A DNA stretch of 64,000 nt from Camelus dromedarius (taxonomy: Eukaryota), in the NCBI RefSeq assembly GCF_036321535.1, contig NC_087443.1, forward strand, positions 15,562,001-15,626,000, in the 5' to 3' direction. The position numbers and the translations under genes are program-made. Each line of letters opens with the position of its first letter. Within the stretch, counting starts at the first letter, position 1. Shown here one piece after another: positions 1 to 60,811 of the stretch. The notes beneath the pieces were generated by a model. It saw only the letters and a list, made by a program, of their open reading frames with translations. It was not told where the DNA came from and did no database searches.

Positions 1-480
1 GGCGGGGGTCGTTCTCGGCCTCGCCGGAAAGCCGGGGCTTGTGGGGCGGGGCGATCTCGGCTGTGGCGAGACAGCCTGGGAGGGGGGCGCCCTTGGCCGC
101 TCGGGGAGATCTGGTGCGGGGGTCGTTCTCGGCCGCGCCGGGAAAGCCGGGGCATGGGGCGGGGGGCGATCTCGGCTGTGGCTGGACAGTCTGGTCCGGA
201 GGCGGCCTCTGCCGTGCGGGAGAGCCGTGGCGCGGGGAGAGCCGGGGCGGGGTTCGGTCTCCGCTGCGCAGATCGTGGCGGCTGGGGCCTGCGGGCGGGC
301 TGCTGTGGACAGCGCTGAGCCGCCTGCCGAGACTGTTGAGAGGCGCGCGACTCCCGGAGGCTTGGCCTGAGGTGGCTGCTGGGGGCTCGGTGCCTGCCTG
401 GAGGCCGCAGGGAGAAGGCGGGCCTGGGGCTGGGGCTGGCGGCCCTCCAGCTCCGACAAGGGACCTGTGCCCGCGCACTA
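1..480. promoter_or_regulatory. CpG island with G-rich degenerate minisatellite (copy 1, truncated by the window edge)
   Basis: Very GC- and CpG-rich, with repeated ggggtcgttctcggcc, ggggcgatctcggctgtggc and ggggagagcc motifs. Confidence 0.85.
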
Positions 481-811
481 CCAGCTAGTCTTCACCTGCG
501 ATGTCTGTGGGACTGGGTACTCCAAGCATATCTCCAAGCTTGCCTATCACCAGGGTGTGGTCATTGTGACCTGTCCTGGCTGCCAGACCCACCACACCAC
601 CCCGGACAACCTGGGTTGGTTCTCGGACCTGGATGGGAAGAGGAATATTGAAGAAATCCTGGCAGTCAGAAGGGAGAAGGTATGCCAAGTGGCTGGCAAG
701 GGGGTCCAGGAGCTTGTTTTAGAGGCTGCGGGGTCCCCCAAATCCACCAGTGCTGTGGCAGGGGCTGAGGACCAGGATCCCACCCACCCTGGCAAGAAGG
801 AGACCAGCTGA
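300..811 (+). pseudogene. DNLZ: DNLZ (HEP1/Zim17, DNL-type zinc finger) processed retrocopy, copy 1
   Basis: Frame 371-811 reads ...[85 protein letters not shown]..., matching DNLZ (HYQLVYTCKVC...[28 protein letters not shown]) with no introns. The start codon is replaced by CTG at 300 (LLWTAL vs MLRTAL). There are apparent frameshifts at ~350-385 and an in-frame TGA at 368. Confidence 0.93.
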
Positions 812-868
812 CTCACCTTCTGCCTTCAAGAACTATACTCTGGCCCTGGGCTGCTCTGGACGTGCCAA

Positions 869-893
869 TTTTTTTTTTTTTTTTTTTTTTTTT
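869..893 (+). repeat. Poly(T) tract in the presumed DNLZ 3'UTR (T25; T27, T25, T25, T27 in copies 2-5)
   Basis: Counted directly; length varies between units. Confidence 0.95.
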
Positions 894-2959
894 AATCAGT
901 AGCTATCGTTTGCAGATGTGGGGCCTGGGGGTCTCCTGCTCTCCCTGGTTCTGGAGTCAGAAGGACTCCCGAGAACCCTCTGTGGGCTGCAGCTGGGGCC
1001 TTCTGCAGCTACAGGCCATGTCCCAGTGGGAAGGGGCTGGACTTGGAGTCTGCGCCCCTCCTGGCTGTGGCTGTGTGGCCTTGGGCAGGTCACTTTGCCC
1101 CTGTGGGCCTCTGTCTTCCTGTCTCCAGATGAAAATGCTCAGAGCGCCACCTTGTCAGGAGGACAGGCAGAAAGACAAGACTCAGAACAGACATGGGGTG
1201 GCTCAGTCCTGCCCCAAATGTCAAGGTCCCCGTCTTGCTGGTTCTCAGGGATTCCAGGAAAGGATGGCCAGTTAGCCAGTGTACTTCCCGGGTGCAGGAT
1301 CAGCACCCCCACACCCATCTGCAGATCTTGTCCCTCTGGCCAGACGCAAGGAGGCCCCACAGATCCTTCTGTGGCACCTGCTGTCCCCTGGACAGCACTG
1401 GTGAACAAGTGCCAACTTCAGCCCTGACTTTTGGCCACTGGCCAAGCGGTCAGGAAAGCAGGCCACTCGCTGTCACCACTGACAGGCCAGGCAGCCGTGG
1501 TGACAAGGGGCGTGTGTGCGAGGGGTGCTTTCTGATGGGCGGTGGGCCGCGTGCCCCGCATTTGTCTCCCAGCCTTGTCTGACTGTCTTCTCAGGATGTT
1601 CCTGTGTTTATGAGAGCGTGTTTATTTCCAGAAGCCTTCTGGGCAGTGTGAGCTTCAGCATTAATCACCCAGCCACCATCTCACAGGATCCCAGCAGGAT
1701 GCGCGCTCCCAGTTGCCGACCCCCTCGCCCCCGGTCCTCAGCATGGTTCTCGAGGCACTGGCAGTCTGTGCTCTGACTCGGTTACCCCCGTCCTTCCCCT
1801 TGGCGAACAAGCCTGGATTATTCCAGCCCAGAGCCCCCTGTTCCATTTGTGAAGTCCAACCTGGAGGCTGAGCCAGCAGCCCCACCACTGCCTGTTCTCC
1901 TGTGCCACAGAAGCCCCAGGTGACCCACTGGCCTTGAAATGCCTGATCTGCAGGGCTGGGTAGAGGCATGGCTGCTTTGCTGACCCCAGACAGTTAGGAC
2001 CTGAATTCGGGGAGGTCCTGGGGGCTGGCTGGACTCTGAGAGTGCAGGGCTGGACCTTGGAGGGCCACTGGGACCAATCCCGCCCTCCACGGATGCGGAA
2101 ACAGAGGCCTGTGGTTTGGACATGTATGCTAGCCGTTTTTTATTGTCTGTTTTCTGACACTTTGACATCTGGGTCCCACTGACCCTGGAGGGGCTGCCCC
2201 TCCCAGGGCTAGTCAGTTCCTAGAGACAGTAGAAGATGCCAGTGAGCACACCCAGGGCGGGGACAGACAAGTAGGGGCAGCCCCTCCACCCAGAGATGCT
2301 GATTCCTCCCACCTGCTAGTCCTGCCTCCCTGTTGCTCGCCATGGAAACCACAGGAGAGGCTCTTGCCCACTTTTTCCCCTCCCCTGCCTCCTGACCCGC
2401 GAGGGCCCTGCTGATGCTCCTCCAAGGGCAGTGCCCCATCTGCACGGATGCTTCTCAGCCCAGCCAGGGCCCAGTGGTCCAAGTGAGCCCACTTTGTGCG
2501 AGGCCAGGCTGCCACTGACTTCAAGACTTCAGAAAGACATCTCAGATGCGAAGGGACCCATCACAGGAATGTCCATATGTTTTTCCTTCTAAGCCATGAC
2601 TCAGGAGTAAAAGCAAAATAACATTGTGTTCAGATCCAAGAGACTCAGAGAGTTTGCCGCTGTCAGGCTGTCACTGAGAGTGAGGACGGTTGGATTGAAG
2701 GAAGAAATGAACGAATCCCAGAAGGAACGAGTGGAGAGTGAGACACGAGGTGGGGAAATGGGTGAGTGCAGGTCTGTCTGACAGTCATGACTATGTAAAT
2801 CAAGCATCGGGGGTTAGTAAGAACGATTATCATGAGTAATGAGAAGGCAAAAACCTCTGTGGTTCGGTGTTGTGTCCTGGCCATCACCGGCCACCCTACC
2901 AGGGCTCAGGAAGCCTGAGCTGAGGTAGAAAGGGCAGAAAAATACCTATATACTAGTCA

Positions 2960-3420
2960 CTCACATCCATCTGTGTAAGAAGAATTGTGCACCATGAACA
3001 AGTGGGAAAGATTCCTGGAATGCAGGGTGGCTTCACCCTAGAAAAATGCATGAGTATATACTCCATTCCATTAACAGTGTGAGGAGAAAAAACAGGATCA
3101 TCCCAATGAATGCCGAGAAGGAAATGGATGAATTCACCACCATCTTCTGAATTTCATGGAAACATGAGAAATTTAAAGGGTCATATACACACAATGTTTT
3201 TTTCTTCAATAACTCTAGCCCAACTGGATAATAACAATTTTTAGAAGTATCACAGCATTATATACTGCGTTATAGCACAATATCACTTCAAACTGTTCCT
3301 CATGCTGTGCGTCAGGTCTTTTAGAGCCTCATCAGAGAAATGGCTCCATTTAGTAGGGATGCTCATTGCAAGAAAAACATGCTTCCTTTATGCCATCGAA
3401 TTTAACATAGATTGTTCAGG
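2960..3420 (+). mobile_element. Degenerate LINE-1 ORF2 (RT region) fragment; repeated in each unit (+11829, +23651, +35481, +47317)
   Basis: caccatgaacaagtgggaaagattcctggaatgcagggtggcttc...aaaaaacaggatcatcccaatgaatgccgagaagg resembles L1 ORF2 HHDQVGFIPGMQGWF...KNHMIISIDAEKAFD. Confidence 0.7.
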
Positions 3421-4346
3421 AGAAACCCCCCCCCCCATTATGACAGTCATGCAGAGCGGTATTTCTCCATGTGGTGACTGATCCCTAAATTCAGTCCCAT
3501 AGTGGAACTACAGGTCTGTAGGATCTAATATTCTGACTTTGGATCCCTGAGGGAGTCAGAGGTGTCCCCTGAGTCCTAGAGTGGAGAGCCACACAGCAGG
3601 AGAGTCAAGGGGGCCAAAATGAGAACGGAAGTGAGAGCAGATGGTGAGATGTGATGTGGGAGAGCCCTGGGATCATGTGGGTCCTGGCTGAGGGGCTCTG
3701 TGGGAAGGTCTTCAGGAGTAAACGGCCTGGCAGGTGTGGCAGGTGAGGAAGGTGCCTATGTATGATGACCTCCTGTCAGGAAAGCTCCAGGAGTGGCCCC
3801 ATTTCAAATATATTCCCGAACCTGTCCTATCTTCCCTCCCAACTGTATTCACTCAGCAATACGTGTACATCTTCTTGGCCAAGTGCTGGGCTGGAGATCT
3901 GTAATATGCTCAAAACCAGGCATAGACTCTGCTCCCAGGTGGCTGAGCGTTCGTTATACTACAATCCAGGGAAAGCCGTTGTAGGTAGAGGAGCAGGTAA
4001 TTGAAATCAAAACCTGTCCCTCTCCCGCAGTTCTTATCATCACTGTTCTTTCTTCTGACACTTTAGGATACACAGGATTGTAGCAAAGCCCCCCAGGCGA
4101 AAGCAGACTCAGTGCTCTGGGGATAGAAGTCGATGCGGACCCACCTTGGCTGTGCTGAGCAGGAGAAATTCCCCGGTGAGTGACTCTCACCGAGACCTAC
4201 TGCCCTGCTTCAATTGTCTCCTAGGGATTCAGGGACAACCCCACTGTCCTGTGAGCAGACCTCTTTCTACCCAAATCTACATCACACACACACAAGGCAA
4301 CATGAATTAAAATATCTCTACTACATTGCACTGATTGTCAAAGTCT

Positions 4347-4352
4347 TTTATT
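4347..4352 (-). terminator. Poly(A) signal AATAAA of the RALGDS-like gene (also at 16172, 27994, 39824, 51660)
   Basis: Plus-strand TTTATT ~160 nt downstream of the TAA stop in the last exon, followed by a GU/U-rich stretch. Confidence 0.7.
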
Positions 4353-4512
4353 TAAATAGATATTTACAAACGCAGACGGTTGGAGGGAGAGAGGAAGGGA
4401 CAGAGGTGGACACAGATGGGTGCTGGACACAGACTAACACATGTCTGTGTATCCCAAGGGACAACTTCCACTCAGTGGCCAACTTCTTTTTGTGAATTAC
4501 AGTGTATTGAGA

Positions 4513-7500
4513 TTAGACCTGAAATGAGATTGAAGGAAAAAACCAAAGCTCTATAGCTTAAAGAAATCCTCACTTTCTAAAACATGTTCTGAGGGGGGCT
4601 AAATTGGGAAGGACCACGTTGGAATGGAACAGTGTTTCTCAGAAGCAGTGACACCCCTCCCTCTGGTGGCCATATGGGAATGGCAAGTGAGCTGCTGGCT
4701 CCATGGATGTCGGACAAACAGGCAACATTCACACAAACACAACATCAGTCTCACTCCAAAAAAAAAACAAACCCTCTAAGATCAAAATTCGGGGTTGCCT
4801 TCTATGTCCTTGTCTTGATCATGACATGACCGGCCACTTACCAAGGGCGGGGTCTCAGGGAGTGTTGATGGAGGCCCTGAGCTGGGCCCTGGGTCCACAG
4901 CAGACAAGGGAGAGGAGGCCGCTGCCTCACAGGACCTGCAGGGAGAGATTGGGAACATGCTGGGTTCACTTGTCCACATCCCCGCCCGGTGTGCCTGGTG
5001 CAGAGAAGTGAGTGTATCCAAACAAAGACATGTAGGGCACTTTGATGTTTCTATTAACAATAAAACACAAACACAACAGGCCGCAAGGAATATGTTATCA
5101 CCTCTAAGAGTAATCCGGAATTGTAAATCACAGACACCTCAAGAACAGTGGGCGTCCCGGGCCTGAAGGCGACGGGAGGCAGCAGAGCCTGACTGATACT
5201 TACAGCGCGTCCCTCTGCTCTGGCTCTGGTGCTGTTGCAGGCAGGAGAGCTGGAGCTGGCTCTCCATCCAGAGGGGCTTCCCCAGCGGGTTCTGGAGCTG
5301 GTGCTGTAGCTCCAAGAAGGGAAACTCTCATCAATAGGACTGCTTTCCCACGTGTCTCCCAAAGCCAGGGGAGCCCTCACTGCTACTCAATCAACTCTCA
5401 CTCCCTGACTCCACCCCCAGGGAGTCTTCCCAGACTCTGCTCTGTGGGGTCCAGTGCCTTCCCCTCCCCACCCACCAGATCCCCCACCCTGCATCCTGCT
5501 CACCATCACTGTCTGCCTCTGGGAGCTCCAGTTGCTCCAGCTGTGCCAGGAGGAGGTGGGCCTGCTGCTCCAGGTCGGAGCCAGGCATGCTGAGCTCTAC
5601 GTAAGCGACAATGGTCTTAAGGCATGGGAATTCTGGAGGCTGGTGGAAATCGTCTGGGTACTGGAACAGCCAGGTGCCCAGGATGGAGGACATGGCCCTG
5701 GGGGTAGTCAGGGGGACACCAGGGTCAGAGGCTTGGCCTTTCCTACCATGCTGGGCTCCCAGGGTAGCCCTGCGGGGACCTGGGCCTTTTTGCCTTTGGC
5801 TCCTGCCCATCCAGAGGCCGGCTCTGCTCCATGTCCCATCTCAGCTGGCAGTGTGGGCAGAGGCGGGCTTGGACACAGAGGAGGGGCTGCTACCAGCCTT
5901 CTGAAGGGACAGCCCTGGCTCAGTGGTGTGACCACCTGTCCACCACTTCAGGGACAACTGTCACACTGCTATGTCCCTCTCCCTGCCCCTCCCCACTGGA
6001 TGGCACATCTGTGAGGACAGGCAGGCTGTGCGTTCTGGGCACTGCCCTCTAAGGGACACGGGAGCTGCTCTATCAGTGCCTGAGCCAGGAGGGAACAGAC
6101 AGGCTGTGTCGGCCATCCAGGCTGCCCACGGGCCTCCTAACTCCACAGACTTTAGCTCCTGCACCTGCTGGCTGCAGAATCCTCCAGGGACCCTGCCTGG
6201 GTCTCCTTCTGCCCCTGCCACTCAGCATCATCAGGATGGGCTCAGCTGTCCCCTGAGGCTCACTGGGTCCCCTGAGCACCAGCTGAGTCCCCACCATTGA
6301 GGCTCCACTAGATGGTGGGCAGGATGCTCTCCACCCCTTGCGTTCTGTGTCTCCCATAGGGCGTGTGGGCAGGGATGGGATGTGTAGGGGATGGTTGTGG
6401 GTTTTCTTCAGGGTTGACTCTGTCTTCTGACCTCCCAGCTGCCCCTCACAGCACCACAGTCCCATCCACAGCTCTCTGGGTCTCGTCTCCTCTTTGCCAG
6501 GGGAAGCCCTAGGACTTTTGCTCTCAAACCAGACTCACTGGATATGTGGGATCCTGGATTCTGCCCACCTTGGACCAACCAGAGAGCCCAGAGCTTCACA
6601 CACTATTTGGGGAAGGAGTCCTTCCCGCTTCAATCCAAAAGACTCACTGTTTCAGCTGGTGCAGGGGTCCCCCGTCCTCTTCCATAACAGGGAGGATGCA
6701 TCCGTATCTAGAGGAGAGCAGGAAGGCGTCACATGGACTGTCCCGAGCACACTAGCTGGATGTGCTGTCTAGTGTGACAGTGTGACACCCCAGAGAATGG
6801 AAGCCCTGGAGGGCAGGGCTGATGTCTGCTCGATGCATTAAATGATGGTTGTTCCTAGAAAAGCCCCTCGCCCTGGGGGCCCTTCCTATACATTGGAGGA
6901 ATGAGTGAGTGAGCCCACCCGGCCCCACAGCGCACATCTGAGTGGGCCTGGGACCCCACTTGTCCCTCCCAGGGATCCCTGCTCTCACTCTCCCAGGACA
7001 GGGACAGCTAATGGCGTCACAGATCCCCTTTGAAATGGGAAAACAGTTCCACCCAAGGCCAAAGTCCCAGTGACACAGGAGGCAGACGCTAGCTCTTGGG
7101 CAGGAGGACAATGACAAATTCGCACAACCACAGCCCCGCCAGCTGCTCTTGCCCTGAGCCAGGTCCCCAGAGAGCACCTTCCGTGAAGGTCTCCCTCTGA
7201 TCCTACCCTCCTAGGGCCTGATCCTCTCTTGACCCCAGGGTGCAGGGGGGAAACTGAGGCTTAGGGAGGTAGAGGAACAATGCCTCATGGCACTGCTGGT
7301 AGGTGGCCAGGTCCCCAATGTCCCATGAAGACAGAGTGCTCACCTCCGGAACAGATGGTCCAGCACCTGCTGGGCGGTGGCAAAAGTTCGATAATTGCCC
7401 AGAAATGTGTTCACATAGGAGGGGTGGCCGCCCAGGACGGCAGGCACCAGCTTTGCCACCAGCTTCTCCAGCCTGTGTCGCTGGAGGCTCCAAGCCCTGT

Positions 7501-8820
7501 AGGCCTCATCCCTGCTCCCTGATGGTCCAGCTCCACCCTGGGGTGGAAAGAGGAGAGATGTGAATCAGAGGCAGCACCGGGGACCCCCAGGCACTTGGGG
7601 CTGGAGATTAGACCGAATCCTCAAGCCTCAAGCTCTTGTGACTGAGGTGGAACAGGGGAGCCCTGAGCAGATCCAAGGTTCTCGGCATCACCAGTACAAG
7701 GGGCGAAGGGCGATGATGAAATGCGTCAGTGCCTCAGATCCCTGTGTCAGCACCGCAGTGCCGGCCCCTCCCTGCATGCACCACTTCATCCCCGTGACTG
7801 CGGTCACACATCCCATTCTAGGGATGAGAACACAGCGGCTGAGCCTGGGGTGGGTGGGCTCAGGATATTCAGTTTAATGTGGACACGTGGGGATGTAGAA
7901 GAAACAGGACAACGTGTAGAAAAATGCAGAAACACCCTTGACTGTACATATACTGAAGTTCTGTCCAAGTCTCTTTCTCAGATTTGGACTCATATGTGGG
8001 CACTGACTTTGCGTCTGGCTAAGGCAGGGCCTGGGATGTGACGGCAGATGGGGGAGACGGGGCATCAGATCCCTTTGCCAGCAGCTCTCTTAAGAGGCAG
8101 CCCAGGGGAGAAGCGGGGCAGCAGTGGGGCCCGGGGCTTCCTGGGTGTGGATTCTCCTCGCTCACACTCACACTGAGCGCGTCCTTGGCTCTGCTGCTGT
8201 CGTGGGGCACCTGCGCCTCCTGCAGGGAGGTGGCGCGGGGTTCTCCATGGACCAGTTCCTGTCCCGTCCCTTGTGTTGAGTCCTGTAAATACAGTGCCCA
8301 GAGGCCAGGCAGCAGCCTCAGAACCCTGTCTGGTTGTCCGACCCATAAGAAATCTCCAGTCCTGACACACATCCACCACTGTCTGCACAGACCTCCTTCA
8401 GGGGCAGAAAAGCTGACAAAGTGGGAGCCTTGTATTCCCATTGACACAGAGAAGATGCCCCTCAGGGGTCCTCTTTCCCCCTTATCAGCCCTGTCCTTGG
8501 GTGCGGCCATGACAGGACCACCAGGTTACCAAGTGTTCAACAAGCCATTCCTGCCCAGAGGGGACACCTCCTCTCAAGTCCCCCTTCAGCGACATGGGGA
8601 TGAGGGAAAGCGGGCCTGCCCAGGGAGGGCCCCCAGTGGAGGCCGGTCCCACACTGGCCTTCTCCAGGCCACCCTGCGTTACCTTAGGTGACCTGCGCAA
8701 AATAGGCCACAGGCGTCTGGGTGGAGGGTTCCACAGACGCCTACAGCCACCGAAGAACCTCGCAGTCCAGGGTTTCCTGGCGGAGAAGCCCCGGGAGACC
8801 GGGAAACAAGAGGAGAACAT
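4513..8820 (-). CDS. RALGDS-like: RalGDS-like REM-domain-only protein, copy 1, 298 aa; join(8683-8820, 8172-8282, 7344-7537, 6648-6707, 5504-5697, 5204-5303, 4842-4935, 4513-4518)
   Basis: All introns are GT-AG, the phases are compatible, and the CDS is 894 nt plus TAA. The exons give DSTQGTGQELVHG..., RLEKLVAKLVPAVLGGHPSYVNTFLGNYRTFATAQQVLDHLFRR, YGCILPVMEEDGGPLHQLKQ and AMSSILGTWLFQYPDDFHQPPEFPCLKTIVAYVELSMPGSDLEQQAHLLLAQLEQ. These align with RALGDS (TLEKLVEHLVPAFQGSDLSYVTIFLCTYRAFTTTQQVLDLLFKR / YGCILPYSDEDGGPQDQLKN / AISSILGTWLDQYSEDFCQPPDFPCLKQLVAYVQLNMPGSDLERRAHLLLAQLE, recalled from memory). An alternative in-frame acceptor at 5309 is possible for exon 6. Confidence 0.85.
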
Positions 8821-8925
8821 CCTGTGTCTTCAACTGTCTCCAGCCAAGTGCGCTGGCTCTGGAGCCGTCACTAGAATGTGGGTGCCTGGTAACCAGGTTC
8901 CATTTCGGTTGGGGTCTGTGAAGGA

Positions 8926-8956
8926 TGTGATGTCACTTCCTGGGGTCCACTTCCTG
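8926..8956 (-). promoter_or_regulatory. Candidate ETS+CRE-like composite element ~110 bp upstream of the ATG
   Basis: The minus strand reads CCAGGAAGTGGACCCCAGGAAGTGACATCAC: two GGAAGT cores and a TGACATCA CRE variant. Confidence 0.35.
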
Positions 8957-9144
8957 GAAGCCCCTCCTAAGACAACACCTCCACACACTGCCCTCAGGGC
9001 TGCTTGCCTGCTCACGCCCTTCTCCACGTGAACCCGCATCTTGCACAGTTATAGCAGCCCCGCCGTCTCTAGAGCTGCCGGGGAGGGTCTGCATGCAGCT
9101 TTGAGGAGACGCCCTGGCTTCCAGACTCCACCCCTCATACTTAC

Positions 9145-9243
9145 CTGTTCTCCATCCTGGGGAAGTCCTGGTGTGTGTCCAGGCCCGTGTGTCTCCCCAG
9201 CTGCACAGTGGGAATGATTCTAGCAAGTACTTCCAGGGATGTC
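9145..9243 (-). other. Candidate upstream (5'UTR or short coding) exon of the RALGDS-like gene
   Basis: Acceptor ccttattccacttgcacctcag| and consensus donor CAG|GTAAGT; the exon ends ATG GAG AAC AG. Present in all five copies. Confidence 0.5.
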
Positions 9244-9426
9244 CTGAGGTGCAAGTGGAATAAGGCCTGAAAAATTGGAGAGTGATGTCACCTGGAGGTG
9301 TTGCCTGCGACCCAAGTTATCTTCCTCTGACTTCCTCCTCCATGGCTGTTCCTCTTAGGATGCGACGCGATAATTCTTATTCAATGTCATTGTACACGGG
9401 TGTCTATGTGTGTGTCTTTGTTGGTA

Positions 9427-9448
9427 TGTGTGTGTGTGTGTGTGTGTG
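9427..9448 (+). repeat. (TG)n microsatellite: n=11, 11, 15, 17 in copies 1-4 (21252, 33074, 44904); a diverged version lies at ~56733
   Basis: Counted directly. Confidence 0.95.
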
Positions 9449-10129
9449 TTTGCGTGCCTAAACCAGTGCTCACACTCTGTGTCGCCAGTAGGAAACTGTC
9501 CCCACACAGGAGAAATGGGCAAGAGCATCCTGAGGTCTGAGGGTTTCAGTTCTCTAAAGCAAATGGAATGAGAAATTCTGAGGCCCTTGCTGGAAGTTTA
9601 GAGCTCGTGAGTCAAGGCCATGCAGGTAGCAGGGCTGGAACTGGGATTATAGACAGCCTGTGTCCACTGTGCACACTCAGTAGCACAGTCCTGGGAGCAG
9701 GAAAACTGTCCACTTCTCTGATTACACAGTCTGGCACGCTGAACTTCTCCAGCTGGATATGCAGAGACCCAGGGACAGATGGGCAGATGGAGGCTGACAT
9801 CACTAGAGTGACGTGACCATCTCGTTGGCTGCTTCTTTGCCTTCATGGAGCTTCCGTCCACGTAGGAGGAAGGCCAGCGGGTAAACTGAATGACAAGGAA
9901 GGATGTAATCAGGAAGTAATAACTGCTCTGATGGAATACACTGGGGACGTGAGAGAGAGCAAGGCCACGGGCAGCATGGCACGGAGCAAATGACAGTAGG
10001 GACCTCATGACCTGGGGGCCCGAGATCCTCAACTCGGCATCAGAGATAGCAAGGTGAGGCCGAGAGAGGGTGCCCACCCACAGGGAGCTGGCCTCTACCT
10101 CTAGCTCCGTGTGGCGCTCTGGCCTAGCT

Positions 10130-10500
10130 GCTTACCATGGTCACTGCCTCCTGTTCGTGGGCACAGATGCGGCTGGACTCCATTTCCCGGCCTCCCTGGC
10201 AGTCGGGCGCGCTCAGCTGTTGAGGTCTAACGGTGGCATGTGAACTTCAGCACAGCCCATAAAAATCTCCCACACGTTCCCCTTCACGTCCTCCTTCACG
10301 TCCTTGAGACCTGAGAAGCCATATGTCGAAGATGATCGATTCAGCGGATAAAAAGAACCTGGATCCCCGAACTCTGGCTAGGAGAAGAGCTACCCACCAA
10401 GGAAGATAAACCCATCTTGGACGTTACGCAAGGGAAGAAAAGCCCGGGATTGTATTAAGCCACTGAGATATTGGGGGTTACACGTTCAGGCAGCTCACAC
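10130..10500 (+). mobile_element. MaLR MLT1-type LTR relic (also ~21955-22325, ~33785-34155, ~45619-45989)
   Basis: ctccatttcccggcctccctggcagt...cccataaa.atctcccacacg...ttaagccactgagatattgggggttacacg resembles the MLT1 consensus and its 3' end. Confidence 0.6.
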
Positions 10501-10984
10501 GCCACTGAATCGCTGAAGCCACTGTGTCATTGCCACGGCTGCTCATTTGGCCCTTTCTCAGCCTTATCGTATTACCACTTACCTTTTTCCTTTCAGGTCA
10601 CTTTTCCTTCCTATAGGTCCCACTCCCTCAACTGGGATGGCAACAGGGCAGTCAGAGGTTTGCCCTTGTAAGGTGAGTGCTTTCTCTGTTCTCTGCTCCT
10701 TAAAGCGGATTCTGCCTTCACTGCTGTAGCATGTCAATGGATGCTCTTAGGGCCCTTGAAGCCATTTGTACTTTTAGGTGGAGGAATGCTTATTGCTCTG
10801 TCTTTCAGTTTGCTTAGACGACATGCTTTCTACACTACCACGAATACGGTCCTTATCTCAGTCCTTCCCCAAATTGTGATCATGTCTGAACTAGCGGGGC
10901 CCGGGTGAGTATGACAGAACTGCTCATACGCTGCTGTAGCTGCTCATTTCCATGTCCGACTGTACGCTTTTTCAGGACAGGGAG

Positions 10985-11056
10985 TATTTCCTGGGCACCA
11001 GGCACAGTATCAGGCACATAGGAGGCGTTCAACGAATGCTCGCTGAAGGAACGAAT
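10985..11056 (+). mobile_element. L2/MIR 3'-end relic (repeated per unit)
   Basis: ggcacagtatcaggcacataggaggcgttcaacgaatgctcgctgaaggaacgaat matches the L2 tail gcacagtgcctggcacatagtaggcgctcaataaatgtttgttgaatgaatgaat, but with CpG gains. Confidence 0.65.
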
Positions 11057-11184
11057 AGGGTCACTCCACGTCGTCAAACACACCAGGATGCTATGGAAAT
11101 AACCCGCAGCTTTTTCTCCTCCCTGCACTTTTTGGTATTTTATTTAAAAAGGTTGATTTATATAGACAGGTATTTGGGCAATTA

Positions 11185-11500
11185 ATGAATCTTTCTTTAT
11201 AATTTTGTCAATTTCCCATGTAGAGCACAATTTTTCAGGGATACATGAACATACCCATATTCATTGGAACAATGTCTTTGGCTGTGAGCTACCACAAGAT
11301 CTTGTATGTATTTCCCTGTGCTATACAGTATAATCTTGTTCATCGATTCTGCATCTGCCTGTCAGTGTGTGCACATTTCGAACTCCCGGTCTGTCCCGTC
11401 CCACGCCCCTCCCGCTTGGCAACCACAAGTTTGTTTTCTATTTGTATGAGTCTGTTTCTGTTTTGTATTTATGTTCTTTTCTGTTCCTTTTTTCACCTTC
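11185..11500 (-). mobile_element. LINE-1 3'UTR fragment, camelid/cetartiodactyl type (also ~23010, ~34840, ~46674)
   Basis: gtagagcacaatttttcag..atacatgaacatac...gtgagctaccacaagatcttgtat.tatttccctgtgctatacagtataatcttg...ttggcaaccacaagtttgt.ttctat...tgagtctgtttctgttttgtatttatgttc is an antisense L1 3' end of the type I recognise from camelid genomes. Confidence 0.75.
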
Positions 11501-11539
11501 AAAATCATCTTTAAAGCAACAGCCTAGGGAAGCCTGCTT

Positions 11540-12310
11540 CCAAGATGTCGAAGGCGTGGCCCGGGCTTCCCGCACAGAGCTTGGGGCAGGGGGCAGGGGC
11601 GGTATGGGCTGTGCGGGGAGGGCCAGAACAGGAGGGGAGAAATCTGCGGAGCAGGGGCAGGGGAAGGGCTGGGCCAGGAGCGGAGAGCCCGGTTGGGGCG
11701 GTCTCGGCTGTGCGGGGTGAGCTGGGGCGGGGGGCGGCGTCTGCTGCGCGGGGAGAGCCTGGGCAGTGGGCAGCCTCAGCCGGGCGGGGAGATCTGGGGC
11801 GGGGAGGACCGAGGCGGGGAGAGCCTGGGCGGGGGTCGTTCTCGGCCTCGCCGGAAAGCCGGGGCTTGTGGGGCGGGGCGATCTCGGCTGTGGCGAGACA
11901 GCCTGGGAGGGGGGCGCCCTTGGCCGCTCGGGGAGATCTGGTGCGGGGGTCGTTCTCGGCCGCGCCGGGAAAGCCGGGGCATGGGGCGGGGGGCGATCTC
12001 GGCTGTGGCTGGACAGTCTGGTCCGGAGGCGGCCTCTGCCGTGCGGGAGAGCCGTGGCGCGGGGAGAGCCGGGGCGGGGTTCGGTCTCCGCTGCGCAGAT
12101 CGTGGCGGCTGGGGCCTGCGGGCGGGCTGCTGTGGACAGCGCTGAGCCGCCTGCCGAGACTGTTGAGAGGCGCGCGACTCCCGGAGGCTTGGCCTGAGGT
12201 GGCTGCTGGGGGCTCGGTGCCTGCCTGGAGGCCGCAGGGAGAAGGCGGGCCTGGGGCTGGGGCTGGCGGCCCTCCAGCTCCGACAAGGGACCTGTGCCCG
12301 CGCACTACCA
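11540..12310. promoter_or_regulatory. CpG island with ~11 degenerate ~36-bp G-rich repeats, copy 2
   Basis: High GC and CpG density with strong G skew on +; contains an internal ~115-bp duplication (11831-11945 vs 11946-12030). Confidence 0.85.
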
Positions 12311-12638
12311 GCTAGTCTTCACCTGCGATGTCTGTGGGACTGGGTACTCCAAGCATATCTCCAAGCTTGCCTATCACCAGGGTGTGGTCATTGTGACCTG
12401 TCCTGGCTGCCAGACCCACCACACCACCCCGGACAACCTGGGTTGGTTCTCGGACCTGGATGGGAAGAGGAATATTGAAGAAATCCTGGCAGTCAGAAGG
12501 GAGAAGGTATGCCAAGTGGCTGGCAAGGGGGTCCAGGAGCTTGTTTTAGAGGCTGCGGGGTCCCCCAAATCCACCAGTGCTGTGGCAGGGGCTGAGGACC
12601 AGGATCCCACCCACCCTGGCAAGAAGGAGACCAGCTGA
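12127..12638 (+). pseudogene. DNLZ: DNLZ processed retrocopy, copy 2
   Basis: Same sequence and lesions as copy 1 (offset +11827). Confidence 0.93.
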
Positions 12639-15600
12639 CTCACCTTCTGCCTTCAAGAACTATACTCTGGCCCTGGGCTGCTCTGGACGTGCCAATTTTT
12701 TTTTTTTTTTTTTTTTTTTTTTAATCAGTAGCTATCGTTTGCAGATGTGGGGCCTGGGGGTCTCCTGCTCTCCCTGGTTCTGGAGTCAGAAGGACTCCCG
12801 AGAACCCTCTGTGGGCTGCAGCTGGGGCCTTCTGCAGCTACAGGCCATGTCCCAGTGGGAAGGGGCTGGACTTGGAGTCTGCGCCCCTCCTGGCTGTGGC
12901 TGTGTGGCCTTGGGCAGGTCACTTTGCCCCTGTGGGCCTCTGTCTTCCTGTCTCCAGATGAAAATGCTCAGAGCGCCACCTTGTCAGGAGGACAGGCAGA
13001 AAGACAAGACTCAGAACAGACATGGGGTGGCTCAGTCCTGCCCCAAATGTCAAGGTCCCCGTCTTGCTGGTTCTCAGGGATTCCAGGAAAGGATGGCCAG
13101 TTAGCCAGTGTACTTCCCGGGTGCAGGATCAGCACCCCCACACCCATCTGCAGATCTTGTCCCTCTGGCCAGACGCAAGGAGGCCCCACAGATCCTTCTG
13201 TGGCACCTGCTGTCCCCTGGACAGCACTGGTGAACAAGTGCCAACTTCAGCCCTGACTTTTGGCCACTGGCCAAGCGGTCAGGAAAGCAGGCCACTCGCT
13301 GTCACCACTGACAGGCCAGGCAGCCGTGGTGACAAGGGGCGTGTGTGCGAGGGGTGCTTTCTGATGGGCGGTGGGCCGCGTGCCCCGCATTTGTCTCCCA
13401 GCCTTGTCTGACTGTCTTCTCAGGATGTTCCTGTGTTTATGAGAGCGTGTTTATTTCCAGAAGCCTTCTGGGCAGTGTGAGCTTCAGCATTAATCACCCA
13501 GCCACCATCTCACAGGATCCCAGCAGGATGCGCGCTCCCAGTTGCCGACCCCCTCGCCCCCGGTCCTCAGCATGGTTCTCGAGGCACTGGCAGTCTGTGC
13601 TCTGACTCGGTTACCCCCGTCCTTCCCCTTGGCGAACAAGCCTGGATTATTCCAGCCCAGAGCCCCCTGTTCCATTTGTGAAGTCCAACCTGGAGGCTGA
13701 GCCAGCAGCCCCACCACTGCCTGTTCTCCTGTGCCACAGAAGCCCCAGGTGACCCACTGGCCTTGAAATGCCTGATCTGCAGGGCTGGGTAGAGGCATGG
13801 CTGCTTTGCTGACCCCAGACAGTTAGGACCTGAATTCGGGGAGGTCCTGGGGGCTGGCTGGACTCTGAGAGTGCAGGGCTGGACCTTGGAGGGCCACTGG
13901 GACCAATCCCGCCCTCCACGGATGCGGAAACAGAGGCCTGTGGTTTGGACATGTATGCTAGCCGTTTTTTATTGTCTGTTTTCTGACACTTTGACATCTG
14001 GGTCCCACTGACCCTGGAGGGGCTGCCCCTCCCAGGGCTAGTCAGTTCCTAGAGACAGTAGAAGATGCCAGTGAGCACACCCAGGGCGGGGACAGACAAG
14101 TAGGGGCAGCCCCTCCACCCAGAGATGCTGATTCCTCCCACCTGCTAGTCCTGCCTCCCTGTTGCTCGCCATGGAAACCACAGGAGAGGCTCTTGCCCAC
14201 TTTTTCCCCTCCCCTGCCTCCTGACCCGCGAGGGCCCTGCTGATGCTCCTCCAAGGGCAGTGCCCCATCTGCACGGATGCTTCTCAGCCCAGCCAGGGCC
14301 CAGTGGTCCAAGTGAGCCCACTTTGTGCGAGGCCAGGCTGCCACTGACTTCAAGACTTCAGAAAGACATCTCAGATGCGAAGGGACCCATCACAGGAATG
14401 TCCATATGTTTTTCCTTCTAAGCCATGACTCAGGAGTAAAAGCAAAATAACATTGTGTTCAGATCCAAGAGACTAAGAGAGTTTGCCGCTGTCAGGCTGT
14501 CACTGAGAGTGAGGACGGTTGGATTGAAGGAAGAAATGAACGAATCCCAGAAGGAACGAGTGGAGAGTGAGACACGAGGTGGGGAAATGGGTGAGTGCAG
14601 GTCTGTCTGACAGTCATGACTATGTAAATCAAGCATCGGGGGTTAGTAAGAACGATTATCATGAGTAATGAGAAGGCAAAAACCTCTGTGGTTCGGTGTT
14701 GTGTCCTGGCCATCACCGGCCACCCTACCAGGGCTCAGGAAGCCTGAGCTGAGGTAGAAAGGGCAGAAAAATACCTATATACTAGTCACTCACATCCATC
14801 TGTGTAAGAAGAATTGTGCACCATGAACAAGTGGGAAAGATTCCTGGAATGCAGGGTGGCTTCACCCTAGAAAAATGCATGAGTATATACTCCATTCCAT
14901 TAACAGTGTGAGGAGAAAAAACAGGATCATCCCAATGAATGCCGAGAAGGAAATGGATGAATTCACCACCATCTTCTGAATTTCATGGAAACATGAGAAA
15001 TTTAAAGGGTCATATACACACAATGTTTTTTTCTTCAATAACTCTAGCCCAACTGGATAATAACAATTTTTAGAAGTATCACAGCATTATATACTGCGTT
15101 ATAGCACAATATCACTTCAAACTGTTCCTCATGCTGTGCGTCAGGTCTTTTAGAGCCTCATCAGAGAAATGGCTCCATTTAGTAGGGATGCTCATTGCAA
15201 GAAAAACATGCTTCCTTTATGCCATCGAATTTAACATAGATTGTTCAGGAGAAACCCCCCCATTATGACAGTCATGCAGAGCGGTATTTCTCCATGTGGT
15301 GACTGATCCCTAAATTCAGTCCCATAGTGGAACTACAGGTCTGTAGGATCTAATATTCTGACTTTGGATCCCTGAGGGAGTCAGAGGTGTCCCCTGAGTC
15401 CTAGAGTGGAGAGCCACACAGCAGGAGAGTCAAGGGGGCCAAAATGAGAACGGAAGTGAGAGCAGATGGTGAGATGTGATGTGGGAGAGCCCTGGGATCA
15501 TGTGGGTCCTGGCTGAGGGGCTCTGTGGGAAGGTCTTCAGGAGTAAACGGCCTGGCAGGTGTGGCAGGTGAGGAAGGTGCCTATGTATGATGACCTCCTG

Positions 15601-16337
15601 TCAGGAAAGCTCCAGGAGTGGCCCCATTTCAAATATATTCCCGAACCTGTCCTATCTTCCCTCCCAACTGTATTCACTCAGCAATACGTGTACATCTTCT
15701 TGGCCAAGTGCTGGGCTGGAGATCTGTAATATGCTCAAAACCAGGCATAGACTCTGCTCCCAGGTGGCTGAGCGTTCGTTATACTACAATCCAGGGAAAG
15801 CCGTTGTAGGTAGAGGAGCAGGTAATTGAAATCAAAACCTGTCCCTCTCCCGCAGTTCTTATCATCACTGTTCTTTCTTCTGACACTTTAGGATACACAG
15901 GATTGTAGCAAAGCCCCCCAGGCGAAAGCAGACTCAGTGCTCTGGGGATAGAAGTCGATGCGGACCCACCTTGGCTGTGCTGAGCAGGAGAAATTCCCCG
16001 GTGAGTGACTCTCACCGAGACCTACTGCCCTGCTTCAATTGTCTCCTAGGGATTCAGGGACAACCCCACTGTCCTGTGAGCAGACCTCTTTCTACCCAAA
16101 TCTACATCACACACACACAAGGCAACATGAATTAAAATATCTCTACTACATTGCACTGATTGTCAAAGTCTTTTATTTAAATAGATATTTACAAACGCAG
16201 ACGGTTGGAGGGAGAGAGGAAGGGACAGAGGTGGACACAGATGGGTGCTGGACACAGACTAACACATGTCTGTGTATCCCAAGGGACAACTTCCACTCAG
16301 TGGCCAACTTCTTTTTGTGAATTACAGTGTATTGAGA

Positions 16338-19300
16338 TTAGACCTGAAATGAGATTGAAGGAAAAAACCAAAGCTCTATAGCTTAAAGAAATCCTCACTT
16401 TCTAAAACATGTTCTGAGGGGGGCTAAATTGGGAAGGACCACGTTGGAATGGAACAGTGTTTCTCAGAAGCAGTGACACCCCTCCCTCTGGTGGCCATAT
16501 GGGAATGGCAAGTGAGCTGCTGGCTCCATGGATGTCGGACAAACAGGCAACATTCACACAAACACAACATCAGTCTCACTCCAAAAAAAAAACAAACCCT
16601 CTAAGATCAAAATTCGGGGTTGCCTTCTATGTCCTTGTCTTGATCATGACATGACCGGCCACTTACCAAGGGCGGGGTCTCAGGGAGTGTTGATGGAGGC
16701 CCTGAGCTGGGCCCTGGGTCCACAGCAGACAAGGGAGAGGAGGCCGCTGCCTCACAGGACCTGCAGGGAGAGATTGGGAACATGCTGGGTTCACTTGTCC
16801 ACATCCCCGCCCGGTGTGCCTGGTGCAGAGAAGTGAGTGTATCCAAACAAAGACATGTAGGGCACTTTGATGTTTCTATTAACAATAAAACACAAACACA
16901 ACAGGCCGCAAGGAATATGTTATCACCTCTAAGAGTAATCCGGAATTGTAAATCACAGACACCTCAAGAACAGTGGGCGTCCCGGGCCTGAAGGCGACGG
17001 GAGGCAGCAGAGCCTGACTGATACTTACAGCGCGTCCCTCTGCTCTGGCTCTGGTGCTGTTGCAGGCAGGAGAGCTGGAGCTGGCTCTCCATCCAGAGGG
17101 GCTTCCCCAGCGGGTTCTGGAGCTGGTGCTGTAGCTCCAAGAAGGGAAACTCTCATCAATAGGACTGCTTTCCCACGTGTCTCCCAAAGCCAGGGGAGCC
17201 CTCACTGCTACTCAATCAACTCTCACTCCCTGACTCCACCCCCAGGGAGTCTTCCCAGACTCTGCTCTGTGGGGTCCAGTGCCTTCCCCTCCCCACCCAC
17301 CAGATCCCCCACCCTGCATCCTGCTCACCATCACTGTCTGCCTCTGGGAGCTCCAGTTGCTCCAGCTGTGCCAGGAGGAGGTGGGCCTGCTGCTCCAGGT
17401 CGGAGCCAGGCATGCTGAGCTCTACGTAAGCGACAATGGTCTTAAGGCATGGGAATTCTGGAGGCTGGTGGAAATCGTCTGGGTACTGGAACAGCCAGGT
17501 GCCCAGGATGGAGGACATGGCCCTGGGGGTAGTCAGGGGGACACCAGGGTCAGAGGCTTGGCCTTTCCTACCATGCTGGGCTCCCAGGGTAGCCCTGCGG
17601 GGACCTGGGCCTTTTTGCCTTTGGCTCCTGCCCATCCAGAGGCCGGCTCTGCTCCATGTCCCATCTCAGCTGGCAGTGTGGGCAGAGGCGGGCTTGGACA
17701 CAGAGGAGGGGCTGCTACCAGCCTTCTGAAGGGACAGCCCTGGCTCAGTGGTGTGACCACCTGTCCACCACTTCAGGGACAACTGTCACACTGCTATGTC
17801 CCTCTCCCTGCCCCTCCCCACTGGATGGCACATCTGTGAGGACAGGCAGGCTGTGCGTTCTGGGCACTGCCCTCTAAGGGACACGGGAGCTGCTCTATCA
17901 GTGCCTGAGCCAGGAGGGAACAGACAGGCTGTGTCGGCCATCCAGGCTGCCCACGGGCCTCCTAACTCCACAGACTTTAGCTCCTGCACCTGCTGGCTGC
18001 AGAATCCTCCAGGGACCCTGCCTGGGTCTCCTTCTGCCCCTGCCACTCAGCATCATCAGGATGGGCTCAGCTGTCCCCTGAGGCTCACTGGGTCCCCTGA
18101 GCACCAGCTGAGTCCCCACCATTGAGGCTCCACTAGATGGTGGGCAGGATGCTCTCCACCCCTTGCGTTCTGTGTCTCCCATAGGGCGTGTGGGCAGGGA
18201 TGGGATGTGTAGGGGATGGTTGTGGGTTTTCTTCAGGGTTGACTCTGTCTTCTGACCTCCCAGCTGCCCCTCACAGCACCACAGTCCCATCCACAGCTCT
18301 CTGGGTCTCGTCTCCTCTTTGCCAGGGGAAGCCCTAGGACTTTTGCTCTCAAACCAGACTCACTGGATATGTGGGATCCTGGATTCTGCCCACCTTGGAC
18401 CAACCAGAGAGCCCAGAGCTTCACACACTATTTGGGGAAGGAGTCCTTCCCGCTTCAATCCAAAAGACTCACTGTTTCAGCTGGTGCAGGGGTCCCCCGT
18501 CCTCTTCCATAACAGGGAGGATGCATCCGTATCTAGAGGAGAGCAGGAAGGCGTCACATGGACTGTCCCGAGCACACTAGCTGGATGTGCTGTCTAGTGT
18601 GACAGTGTGACACCCCAGAGAATGGAAGCCCTGGAGGGCAGGGCTGATGTCTGCTCGATGCATTAAATGATGGTTGTTCCTAGAAAAGCCCCTCGCCCTG
18701 GGGGCCCTTCCTATACATTGGAGGAATGAGTGAGTGAGCCCACCCGGCCCCACAGCGCACATCTGAGTGGGCCTGGGACCCCACTTGTCCCTCCCAGGGA
18801 TCCCTGCTCTCACTCTCCCAGGACAGGGACAGCTAATGGCGTCACAGATCCCCTTTGAAATGGGAAAACAGTTCCACCCAAGGCCAAAGTCCCAGTGACA
18901 CAGGAGGCAGACGCTAGCTCTTGGGCAGGAGGACAATGACAAATTCGCACAACCACAGCCCCGCCAGCTGCTCTTGCCCTGAGCCAGGTCCCCAGAGAGC
19001 ACCTTCCGTGAAGGTCTCCCTCTGATCCTACCCTCCTAGGGCCTGATCCTCTCTTGACCCCAGGGTGCAGGGGGGAAACTGAGGCTTAGGGAGGTAGAGG
19101 AACAATGCCTCATGGCACTGCTGGTAGGTGGCCAGGTCCCCAATGTCCCATGAAGACAGAGTGCTCACCTCCGGAACAGATGGTCCAGCACCTGCTGGGC
19201 AGTGGCAAAAGTTCGATAATTGCCCAGAAATGTGTTCACATAGGAGGGGTGGCCGCCCAGGACGGCAGGCACCAGCTTTGCCACCAGCTTCTCCAGCCTG

Positions 19301-20645
19301 TGTCGCTGGAGGCTCCAAGCCCTGTAGGCCTCATCCCTGCTCCCTGATGGTCCAGCTCCACCCTGGGGTGGAAAGAGGAGAGATGTGAATCAGAGGCAGC
19401 ACCGGGGACCCCCAGGCACTTGGGGCTGGAGATTAGACCGAATCCTCAAGCCTCAAGCTCTTGTGACTGAGGTGGAACAGGGGAGCCCTGAGCAGATCCA
19501 AGGTTCTCGGCATCACCAGTACAAGGGGCGAAGGGCGATGATGAAATGCATCAGTGCCTCAGATCCCTGTGTCAGCACCGCAGTGCCGGCCCCTCCCTGC
19601 ATGCACCACTTCATCCCCGTGACTGCGGTCACACATCCCATTCTAGGGATGAGAACACAGCGGCTGAGCCTGGGGTGGGTGGGCTCAGGATATTCAGTTT
19701 AATGTGGACACGTGGGGATGTAGAAGAAACAGGACAACGTGTAGAAAAATGCAGAAACACCCTTGACTGTACATATACTGAAGTTCTGTCCAAGTCTCTT
19801 TCTCAGATTTGGACTCATATGTGGGCACTGACTTTGCGTCTGGCTAAGGCAGGGCCTGGGATGTGACGGCAGATGGGGGAGACGGGGCATCAGATCCCTT
19901 TGCCAGCAGCTCTCTTAAGAGGCAGCCCAGGGGAGAAGCGGGGCAGCAGTGGGGCCCGGGGCTTCCTGGGTGTGGATTCTCCTCGCTCACACTCACACTG
20001 AGCGCGTCCTTGGCTCTGCTGCTGTCGTGGGGCACCTGCGCCTCCTGCAGGGAGGTGGCGCGGGGTTCTCCATGGACCAGTTCCTGTCCCGTCCCTTGTG
20101 TTGAGTCCTGTAAATACAGTGCCCAGAGGCCAGGCAGCAGCCTCAGAACCCTGTCTGGTTGTCCGACCCATAAGAAATCTCCAGTCCTGACACACATCCA
20201 CCACTGTCTGCACAGACCTCCTTCAGGGGCAGAAAAGCTGACAAAGTGGGAGCCTTGTATTCCCATTGACACAGAGAAGATGCCCCTCAGGGGTCCTCTT
20301 TCCCCCTTATCAGCCCTGTCCTTGGGTGCGGCCATGACAGGACCACCAGGTTACCAAGTGTTCAACAAGCCATTCCTGCCCAGAGGGGACACCTCCTCTC
20401 AAGTCCCCCTTCAGCGACATGGGGATGAGGGAAAGCGGGCCTGCCCAGGGAGGGCCCCCAGTGGAGGCCGGTCCCACACTGGCCTTCTCCAGGCCACCCT
20501 GCGTTACCTTAGGTGACCTGCGCAAAATAGGCCACAGGCGTCTGGGTGGAGGGTTCCACAGACGCCTACAGCCACCGAAGAACCTCGCAGTCCAGGGTTT
20601 CCTGGCGGAGAAGCCCCGGGAGACCGGGAAACAAGAGGAGAACAT
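16338..20645 (-). CDS. RALGDS-like: RalGDS-like REM-only protein, copy 2, intact; join(20508-20645, 19997-20107, 19169-19362, 18473-18532, 17329-17522, 17029-17128, 16667-16760, 16338-16343)
   Basis: Offset +11825. ATG, splice sites and stop are retained; the only coding difference I saw is a synonymous change at 19201. Confidence 0.85.
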
Positions 20646-33070: not shown

Positions 33071-33107
<37 letters not shown>

Positions 33108-44900: not shown

Positions 44901-44941
<41 letters not shown>

Positions 44942-57420: not shown

Positions 57421-57429
57421 TTTCCTAGA

Positions 57430-58520: not shown

Positions 58521-58559
58521 TCTGACTCTGAGTCCAGCTGCCTCGTGTCACTGTTAACT

Positions 58560-60800: not shown

Positions 60801-60811
60801 TTGCTGATGGA

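Follow-up and report, generated by a model that had tools for sequence, protein, structure and literature searches.

A tandem array of RALGDS-derived genes in the dromedary genome that probably encode a REM domain without a catalytic domain

The 64-kb stretch of dromedary DNA analyzed here (the window) contains a tandem array, and comparison with related sequences indicates that the gene it repeats is probably coding and specifies a non-catalytic REM protein under weak constraint. We consider it reasonably probable that each 11.8-kb unit holds one RALGDS-derived, REM-only gene whose product is made and acts non-catalytically. Such a gene would consist of a family-specific first exon, RALGDS exons 2–5 and a remnant of exon 6 closed by a novel stop codon and poly(A) site; its protein would act by binding, through the REM domain. 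To our knowledge REM domains are known solely as partners of the CDC25 domain within one polypeptide. A conserved, selected, stand-alone REM family would give the domain a function of its own.

The first copy of the gene runs along the minus strand from position 8820 to position 4513. A sequence-only reading had proposed that eight GT-AG exons join here to encode 298 amino acids, and this proved correct: the peptide pieces it quoted were all found on the minus strand where it had placed them, every intron is bounded by GT and AG, and the spliced reading frame of 897 nt comprises 298 codons followed by TAA. The introns have good polypyrimidine tracts and donors of the GTGAGT/GTAAGT type. The features of the gene are as follows.

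8683..8820, minus strand: exon 1, 138 nt; ATG with A at -3; encodes the MFSSCF... N-terminus, the hallmark of the family
8172..8282, minus strand: exon 2, 111 nt, phase 0; homologous to RALGDS exon 2; evolving neutrally
7344..7537, minus strand: exon 3, 194 nt; first half of the REM (RasGEF_N) domain, by Pfam and by tblastn to RALGDS
6648..6707, minus strand: exon 4, 60 nt; REM loop, equal to RALGDS exon 4 in its short form
5504..5697, minus strand: exon 5, 194 nt; second half of REM, with the ILGTW..YPDDF motif and the helices that follow
5204..5303, minus strand: exon 6, 100 nt; Pro/Ala/Glu-rich linker, derived from 5' sequence of RALGDS exon 6
4842..4935, minus strand: exon 7, 94 nt; disordered tail, likewise from RALGDS exon 6 sequence
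4513..4518, minus strand: coding part of exon 8, 6 nt, Val and TAA
4347..4352, minus strand: AATAAA poly(A) signal, the sole one within ~740 nt downstream of exon 7

From exon 8 the 3' UTR presumably continues to the poly(A) signal. The 3' end of the model nevertheless carries some uncertainty, as related loci and models differ. The 6-nt coding end of exon 8 is also present in an alpaca RefSeq model (P0112), which ends ...PPLV; a Camelus ferus model ignores the donor of exon 7, and doing so here would replace the single terminal V with 19 added residues; and exon 8 is missing entirely from one alpaca array (locus L001). Reading through the exon 6 donor leads to a stop at once.

The parentage of the gene is clear from a comparison with the donkey RALGDS locus (L006) and with RALGDS proteins of rodents, human and other mammals. 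Exons 2–5 match RALGDS residues 35–238 (tblastn, E down to 5e-18), and their lengths of 111, 194, 60 and 194 nt correspond to 111, 194, 96 (60+36 alternative) and 194 nt in RALGDS, with equal phases. Between the start of exon 2 and the end of REM the two proteins are ~50–55% identical, exon 5 reaching 73% (tblastn), and hydrophobic core residues are retained; retention of the REM core and of the parental splice phases had been claimed from the letters alone and is borne out. The two genes differ at both ends: the RALGDS first exon is 183 nt long and starts MVQRMW, whereas that of the array is 138 nt long and starts MFSSCF, and everything in RALGDS from mid exon 6 onward, including the CDC25 and RA domains, is missing here. 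Furthermore, RALGDS is a single-copy gene lying between a GBGT1-like gene and CEL, whereas the gene described here stands in a tandem array. None of more than 110 RALGDS proteins has the MFS[CS]C exon, and a search of donkey RALGDS that covered all introns and 10 kb of upstream sequence gave no credible match to it.

It is extremely improbable that there is no gene and that the exon chain is an artefact assembled from chance ORF pieces in GC-rich DNA. The region does lack a single long ORF, and several antisense ORFs of 130–217 aa without a Pfam match lie nearby; none of the other ORFs on either strand, within and beside the gene, matched Pfam, an Rfam scan of positions 1–16000 found no family, and an Alu probe gave no match. 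The chain is not, however, a product of chance, because exons 2–5 match RALGDS in tblastn at exactly the RALGDS exon lengths. This exon-by-exon homology, with equal phases and canonical junctions throughout, refutes the artefact together with a Pfam match above threshold, independent RefSeq models of the same structure and an omega below one (all described below).

Exon 3 alone matches Pfam RasGEF_N (PF00618) with 35.1 bits, above the gathering cut-off of 28.3, over positions 6–47 of the 106 in the profile. Exon 5 alone gave neither a Pfam RasGEF_N match nor a sequence match in the PDB, and the PDB matches of exon 3 were weak ones to SOS only (E about 1). For tests on a complete domain, two public camelid proteins that are 91–92% identical (P0107 and P0104) served as stand-ins for the spliced protein: RasGEF_N was matched with 47–52 bits over profile positions 6–103 of 106, which in the 92%-identical alpaca protein corresponds to residues 105–195. 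In the AF2 model residues 90–228 have pLDDT values of 86–97 and the exon 1 product is disordered. The top Foldseek matches are the REM domains of SOS1 and SOS2 (probability 0.93–1.0, 115–138 aligned columns), with weak E-values of 0.09–1. The product is thus modeled as ~300 residues comprising a disordered N-terminus, a folded REM domain at ~90–228 and a disordered, proline-rich tail.

No similarity to CDC25 (RasGEF, PF00617) or RA (PF00788) was detected anywhere in the 64 kb by tblastn with full-length RALGDS proteins (best E 1.5 or worse): RALGDS matches end at residue 238, and the rest of the repeat unit and the flank yielded no CDC25 or RA exons. Pfam likewise found no RasGEF domain, and no RA domain, in the short members of the family. 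The product was originally described as a RALGDS derivative that has a REM domain, lacks an exchange-factor domain and cannot be a GEF, with a Pfam RasGEF_N match and an absence of RasGEF and RA as the expected outcome; the searches agree with that description on each point. Without a CDC25 or RA domain, nucleotide exchange and RA-mediated binding of Ras are impossible. The REM domains of SOS1 and SOS2 share the predicted helical fold at a sequence identity of only 15–18%; in those proteins REM packs onto the CDC25 domain of the same chain and contributes to the allosteric Ras site, whereas no CDC25 domain is encoded here. A second point of reference is RGL4/Rgr, also a shortened paralogue of the RalGDS family, which keeps the CDC25 catalytic domain without a typical REM and RA and whose N-terminally truncated forms are activating. 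RGL4/Rgr is truncated in the opposite way, the present gene retaining REM alone.

The gene was first described as hidden. This holds for the plain ORF track, but not for the databases, to which the gene is already known: RefSeq has near-identical models from alpaca and camels, and annotates members of the family, under the name 'RALGDS-like', in numerous mammals. The camelid RefSeq genes have the same first exon, exon sizes and REM-only architecture, and their proteins are 87–92% identical to that of the window; the alpaca RefSeq set holds the identical eight-exon structure, and the whole unit of the alpaca arrays is ~92% identical to the window in nucleotides, which points to camelid DNA. Differences comprise amino-acid divergence (8–13%), a variable length of the (Pro-Glu/Ala) repeat in exon 6, and unlike 3' ends, where a gene may read through, lack exon 8 or run on into sequence resembling a repeat. 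Camelid genes are represented by several Gnomon isoforms.

Beyond camelids, REM-only genes with an MFS[CS]C start are present in horse, cat, rabbit, elephant, rhino, bat and hedgehog. The family is found across placental mammals and is often tandemly amplified. Its members are recognized by a 138-nt MFS[CS]C exon (common to the alpaca, horse and cat genes), a protein of ~200–400 aa with RasGEF_N alone, and head-to-tail tandem amplification; all three were found here. The horse gene encodes 286 aa in tandem units of 6.3 kb (11.8–12.5 kb in camelid arrays), with exons 2–5 of 111, 194, 60 and 194 nt; in the non-camelid genes, as here, RasGEF_N is the sole Pfam domain. Outside camelids, however, the genes named above are only 35–50% identical to that of the window and differ from it at the C-terminal end, those of cat and rabbit having longer, hydrophobic tails. 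Cat and rabbit have read-through models with several REM domains, which imply tandem arrays in these species as well. In a tree of REM sequences the short genes cluster together next to RALGDS, and this grouping, with the common MFS[CS]C exon, suggests a single origin.

The array in the window extends past its left end, and its right boundary lies at ~56.5–57.1 kb. It comprises the following elements.

1..57123, no strand assigned: tandem array with an 11.82-kb unit and five gene copies, 99.2–99.96% identical
4513..8820, minus strand: copy 1, intact
16338..20645, minus strand: copy 2, intact; one synonymous difference from copy 1
28160..32467, minus strand: copy 3, intact; G282V and one synonymous change
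39990..44297, minus strand: copy 4, start lost by ATG to ATA; remainder intact
51826..56134, minus strand: copy 5, at the array edge; W99*, exon 3 donor GT to TT, and 7 more missense changes

It is possible, if unlikely, that these copies form a decaying and perhaps transcribed array of unprocessed pseudogenes, in which the signal of selection stems from functional members elsewhere or in the past and copies 1–3 are open because they are young and homogenized. Disabling mutations are indeed present in copies 4 and 5, the former lacking its ATG and the latter having a premature stop and a disrupted splice donor, and none in copies 1–3; changes unique to single copies comprise 9 that are non-synonymous or disabling and 6 that are synonymous. 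With copies 99.2–99.96% identical, intact frames carry little information. Moreover, exon and intron identity between the window and alpaca are the same, at ~95%. The other mark of a pseudogene, neutral evolution with an omega of about 1 and a frame that is not kept, was not found, and the worst damage is restricted to the edge copy, where homogenization is expected to be weakest.

Weighing against decay most directly are the estimates of omega. A value near 1 across the REM exons, named beforehand as counting against selection on the protein, was not seen. For the REM exons of camelids, horse and cat the maximum likelihood estimate is 0.25–0.28 (2dlnL 42–59; p of roughly 1e-10 to 1e-14 for a departure from omega = 1), and even within camelids, among three arrays differing by ~8%, it is 0.33 (p = 0.003). 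Exon lengths and frame are constant across the window, two alpaca arrays and horse: between camelid and horse there are 0 indels in 697 coding nt, where ~11 are expected from introns (P about 1e-5). The strength of the constraint must be read with care. Since dS (0.08–0.11) exceeds intron divergence (0.05), omega may overstate constraint; dN is ~0.5–0.7 of the intron rate, and evolution is neutral in exon 2 and in the tail. The earlier claim of selection on the protein accordingly stands as far as omega of 0.25–0.33 is concerned, but the constraint is weak, is not apparent in exon 2 and leaves exons no more similar than introns.

Notwithstanding this constraint, the family evolves 10–40 times faster than RALGDS, with branch lengths of 0.46–1.0 substitutions per site in the short genes and 0.01–0.05 in RALGDS orthologues. 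Rates of this order, tandem units that differ between camelids and horse, the arrays implied in cat and rabbit, and an MFS[CS]C exon conserved in many orders would all suit a gene that is functional outside Ral/Ras signaling: a fast-evolving, amplified gene of a reproductive or genetic-conflict type, in which the REM fold is a helical binding module of a general kind and the Cys-rich, MFSCC-type N-terminus may tether the protein to membranes. We regard this as rather improbable. The omega estimates lie under 1, the tests that were run gave no hint of positive selection, and palmitoylation is a guess at the level of a motif that in camelids contains a single Cys.

Returning to a REM protein that acts on Ral signaling, the mode of action that we would tentatively rank as most likely is that it stands in, in trans, for the N-terminal part of RalGDS, which is autoinhibitory and binds PDK1. 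The REM protein would then damp or titrate the activation of RalGEFs, and total output would depend on the count of intact copies. A decoy, dominant-negative or trans-inhibitor role is plausible and has indirect support in the literature, where a review describes this autoinhibition and the binding of PDK1 to the RalGDS N-terminus (PMC3215182, citing Tian et al. 2002). Two disabled copies out of five weaken the further proposal that the number of copies in the array sets dosage. More speculative, and in our judgment unlikely, is a broader scheme in which an ancient free-standing REM family split off from RALGDS, with a Cys-rich and possibly lipid-anchored N-terminus, was independently amplified in several orders, its proteins being trans-regulators of RalGEFs tuned by copy number that might, for instance, mimic the RalGDS N-terminus. 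Were it true, such trans-regulators would represent a hitherto undescribed way of controlling small GTPases.

Such a family would also add an unstudied layer to Ras–Ral signaling in many domestic and wild mammals. A literature search found no study of the REM-only family, its traces there being gene names in the rat assembly paper. The rat 'Ralgdsl' genes, known by name and gene span alone, may belong to it; a rat gene bearing that name has Iso-Seq support, which, like the several Gnomon isoforms of camelids, bears indirectly on transcription of the family. The searches yielded no human or mouse member, and function is therefore not transferable from model organisms. It is likely that the family was overlooked for this reason, and on account of arrays that are hard to assemble and a name implying a full exchange factor. 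For annotation the lesson is that a '-like' name masks domain content incompatible with the activity in the name. Annotation pipelines also yield fused multi-REM models that span copies of an array.

The REM-only gene lies on the minus strand and comprises eight exons separated by GT-AG introns with strong donors and pyrimidine-rich acceptors. Every peptide fragment quoted in the sequence-only reading, which had proposed this arrangement, was found in its place on that strand; the spliced exons give 897 nt, encoding 298 residues and a TAA stop, and the exon chain of that reading is confirmed in full.

Exons and AATAAA of the REM-only gene (copy 1)
8820-8683, minus strand, exon 1 (138 nt)
8282-8172, minus strand, exon 2 (111 nt)
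7537-7344, minus strand, exon 3 (194 nt)
6707-6648, minus strand, exon 4 (60 nt)
5697-5504, minus strand, exon 5 (194 nt)
5303-5204, minus strand, exon 6 (100 nt)
4935-4842, minus strand, exon 7 (94 nt)
4518-4513, minus strand, exon 8 (6 nt)
4352-4347, minus strand (same as the gene), AATAAA

A (GT)n microsatellite is present at 9420-9450, ~600 bp 5' of exon 1.

Exon 3 by itself matches Pfam RasGEF_N at 35.1 bits (cut-off 28.3 bits), as had been anticipated. The closest public proteins, P0107 (alpaca, 92% identical) and P0104 (wild Bactrian camel, 91%), served as proxies for the spliced window protein; in both, RasGEF_N is the sole Pfam domain, scoring 47-52 bits over profile positions 6-103/106. 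An AlphaFold2 model of P0107, based on an input alignment of 39 family sequences, is entirely helical over residues ~90-228 (pLDDT 86-97); the 89 N-terminal and 70 C-terminal residues have pLDDT <50. Among PDB folds it best matches the REM region of SOS1/SOS2 REM-CDC25 structures (probability up to 1.0 over 115-138 columns, weak E-values of 0.09-1). Full-length RALGDS proteins carry REM (123-221), RasGEF (379-585) and RA (787-873) domains. When full-length RALGDS was compared to the window by tblastn, similarity was confined to RALGDS residues 35-238, and no CDC25- or RA-like sequence was detected in the whole 64 kb, the flank outside the array included. With neither present, the predicted product cannot be an exchange factor; the earlier description of the gene as REM-only, lacking RasGEF and RA domains and not a GEF, is upheld.

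In donkey, RALGDS is flanked by a glycosyltransferase-6 gene and a carboxyl-ester-lipase-type gene, and its exons measure 183, 111, 194, 96 (60 plus a 36-nt alternative extension), 194, 395, 216 ... nt. In length and phase, exons 2-5 of the REM-only gene (111/194/60/194 nt) agree with these and so correspond to RALGDS exons 2-5. Exons 6 and 7, for their part, align with the proline-rich linker encoded by the 5' portion of RALGDS exon 6, which in the REM-only gene is split by a new intron. The first exon, in contrast, is different (138 nt rather than 183 nt) and is not detectable within the donkey RALGDS locus.

With exon 3 as query, phmmer returned 103 matches among 1.84 billion representatives. 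The more distant short members are those of horse and Przewalski horse (286 aa, a cluster of 63 members), of cat, cheetah and Geoffroy's cat, and of rabbit, Asian elephant, African elephant, black rhinoceros, a Myotis bat and hedgehog; reindeer has a fragment. RasGEF_N is the only domain in each short member scanned. All members with a complete N-terminus begin with MFS[CS]C, a start that >110 RALGDS proteins all lack. The horse genes form a tandem array with a 6.27-kb unit. In alpaca a single chromosome carries at least two arrays (8.0 and 36.2 Mb), both ~92% identical to the window across the entire unit, which points to a camelid source for the window. The alpaca model P0112 (exons 138/111/194/60/194/124/94/6 nt, C-terminus ...PPLV) reproduces exactly the structure of the sequence-only reading. 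The description of the gene as hidden does not extend to current annotation, which already covers the REM-only family with models such as P0112. A literature search found no paper on a REM-only RALGDS-like family; the gene is a new member of a family already annotated but functionally unexplored.

Relative to the window, the alpaca array locus L001 carries 1.75 kb of inserted sequence within intron 6 (13753-15502) and lacks ~400 bp, including exon 8, at 15725-15749, so that the annotated L001 protein ends directly after exon 7. P0001, P0006, P0010, P0024 and P0089, from cat, rabbit and other assemblies, are gene models with 3-13 REM repeats and lengths of up to 2975 aa; they are probably read-through predictions spanning tandem copies. 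The C-terminal tails of P0071 (cat), P0061 (rabbit) and P0113 (an alpaca isoform) are strongly hydrophobic or repeat-like, which points to terminal exons having been acquired in different lineages from unrelated sequence, possibly of transposon origin.

That the short genes have their first exon and the site of truncation in common favours one ancient duplication, no later than the placental radiation, with amplification in individual lineages afterwards. In a tree of the REM region a single branch separates the short genes (support 91/87 without elephant, 77/28 with elephant); terminal branches are 0.01-0.05 in RALGDS orthologues as against 0.46-1.0 in the short genes, and long-branch attraction may be the source of the grouping.

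Within the window the array is head-to-tail with a period of ~11.82 kb, also visible in sequence composition: a probe of 5.2 kb from around the gene recurs at +11825, +23647, +35477 and +47313 with 99.96-99.19% identity. In copy 4 the ATG has become ATA. Copy 5, at the array edge, carries W99*, a change of the exon 3 donor from GT to TT and seven other missense changes, grouped within a 500-bp patch. This patch (54560-55060, around exon 3), which includes the nonsense codon and the lost donor, has 18 mismatches to copy 1 in ~500 bp, as against 0-6 per 250 bp elsewhere in the gene body; it may stem from conversion by a diverged paralogue, or from local decay in this outermost copy. The array in the window may itself be decaying. 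The proposal that array copy number sets dosage is weakened by these disabled copies. At the array end (56300-57123) the final 830 bp retain only 83% identity with the unit, and the flank beyond (57124-64000) is AT-rich (GC 0.37-0.51) and shows no RALGDS similarity.

Selection is concentrated on the REM exons.

Omega estimates and tests against omega = 1
Camelids, horse and cat (maximum likelihood, GY+F3X4), REM exons 3-5: 0.28 (2dlnL 59, p ~1e-14)
Camelids and horse (cat left out), REM exons 3-5: 0.25 (2dlnL 42)
Three camelid arrays, REM exons 3-5: 0.33 (p = 0.003)
Three camelid arrays, exons 1-5: 0.30 (p = 0.0002)
Camelids and horse, exons 1-2: 0.57 (p = 0.06)

Pairwise omega for exon 2 is ~1. 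Between camelid and horse, the five introns contain 40 gap events in 2477 aligned nt, whereas exons 1-5 (697 nt) contain none against ~11 expected (P ~1e-5); cat exons differ in length only in frame. Omega significantly below 1 in the REM exons (0.25-0.33), together with the missing exon gaps, bears out the suggestion of selection on the protein, and the core of the earlier interpretation, a REM-only, non-GEF, selected protein, holds. Between window and alpaca, identity is ~95% in exons and ~95% in introns; dS (0.08-0.11) is higher than intron divergence (0.05), CpG decay being the probable cause, and with intron divergence as the yardstick constraint is only about two-fold. Given these figures and the disabled copies 4 and 5, constraint is weak: the family as a whole encodes protein under weak constraint, and single copies are dispensable.

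The product has a predicted folded REM domain with predicted disordered flanks and lacks catalytic and RA domains, and its gene is present in multiple near-identical copies; the protein would act by binding via its REM domain. A review (PMC3215182, citing Tian et al. 2002) reports that the N-terminal region of RalGDS inhibits its own catalytic domain and that PDK1 binding there relieves this autoinhibition; on its own, a copy of this region might thus act in trans as an inhibitor of RalGEFs, or titrate PDK1. Of the modes considered this is the likeliest, at a fairly low probability, and the decoy role proposed in the sequence-only reading is a hypothesis. The REM-only protein may instead have a role outside Ral, like other fast-evolving amplified gene families. 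As a guess, the MFSCC-type N-terminus is a putative lipid-anchoring motif.

Opposite in strand to the REM gene, each unit also contains a DNLZ-like ORF without introns (114 codons); it starts without ATG, is the same in all five copies and matches Pfam zf-DNL at 86.6 bits.

DNLZ-like ORF in the five units
467-808, plus strand
12294-12635, plus strand
24119-24460, plus strand
35949-36290, plus strand
47783-48124, plus strand

The ORF recurs in both alpaca arrays (in one frame-shifted) and not in the horse or cat loci, and is apparently a retrocopy specific to camelids that was amplified together with the REM gene. Directly upstream of it, at 11560-12290 and the equivalent site in each unit, lie very GC-rich, degenerate tandem repeats, which give BLAST self-matches and spurious ORFs of 256-282 aa on both strands, without Pfam match.
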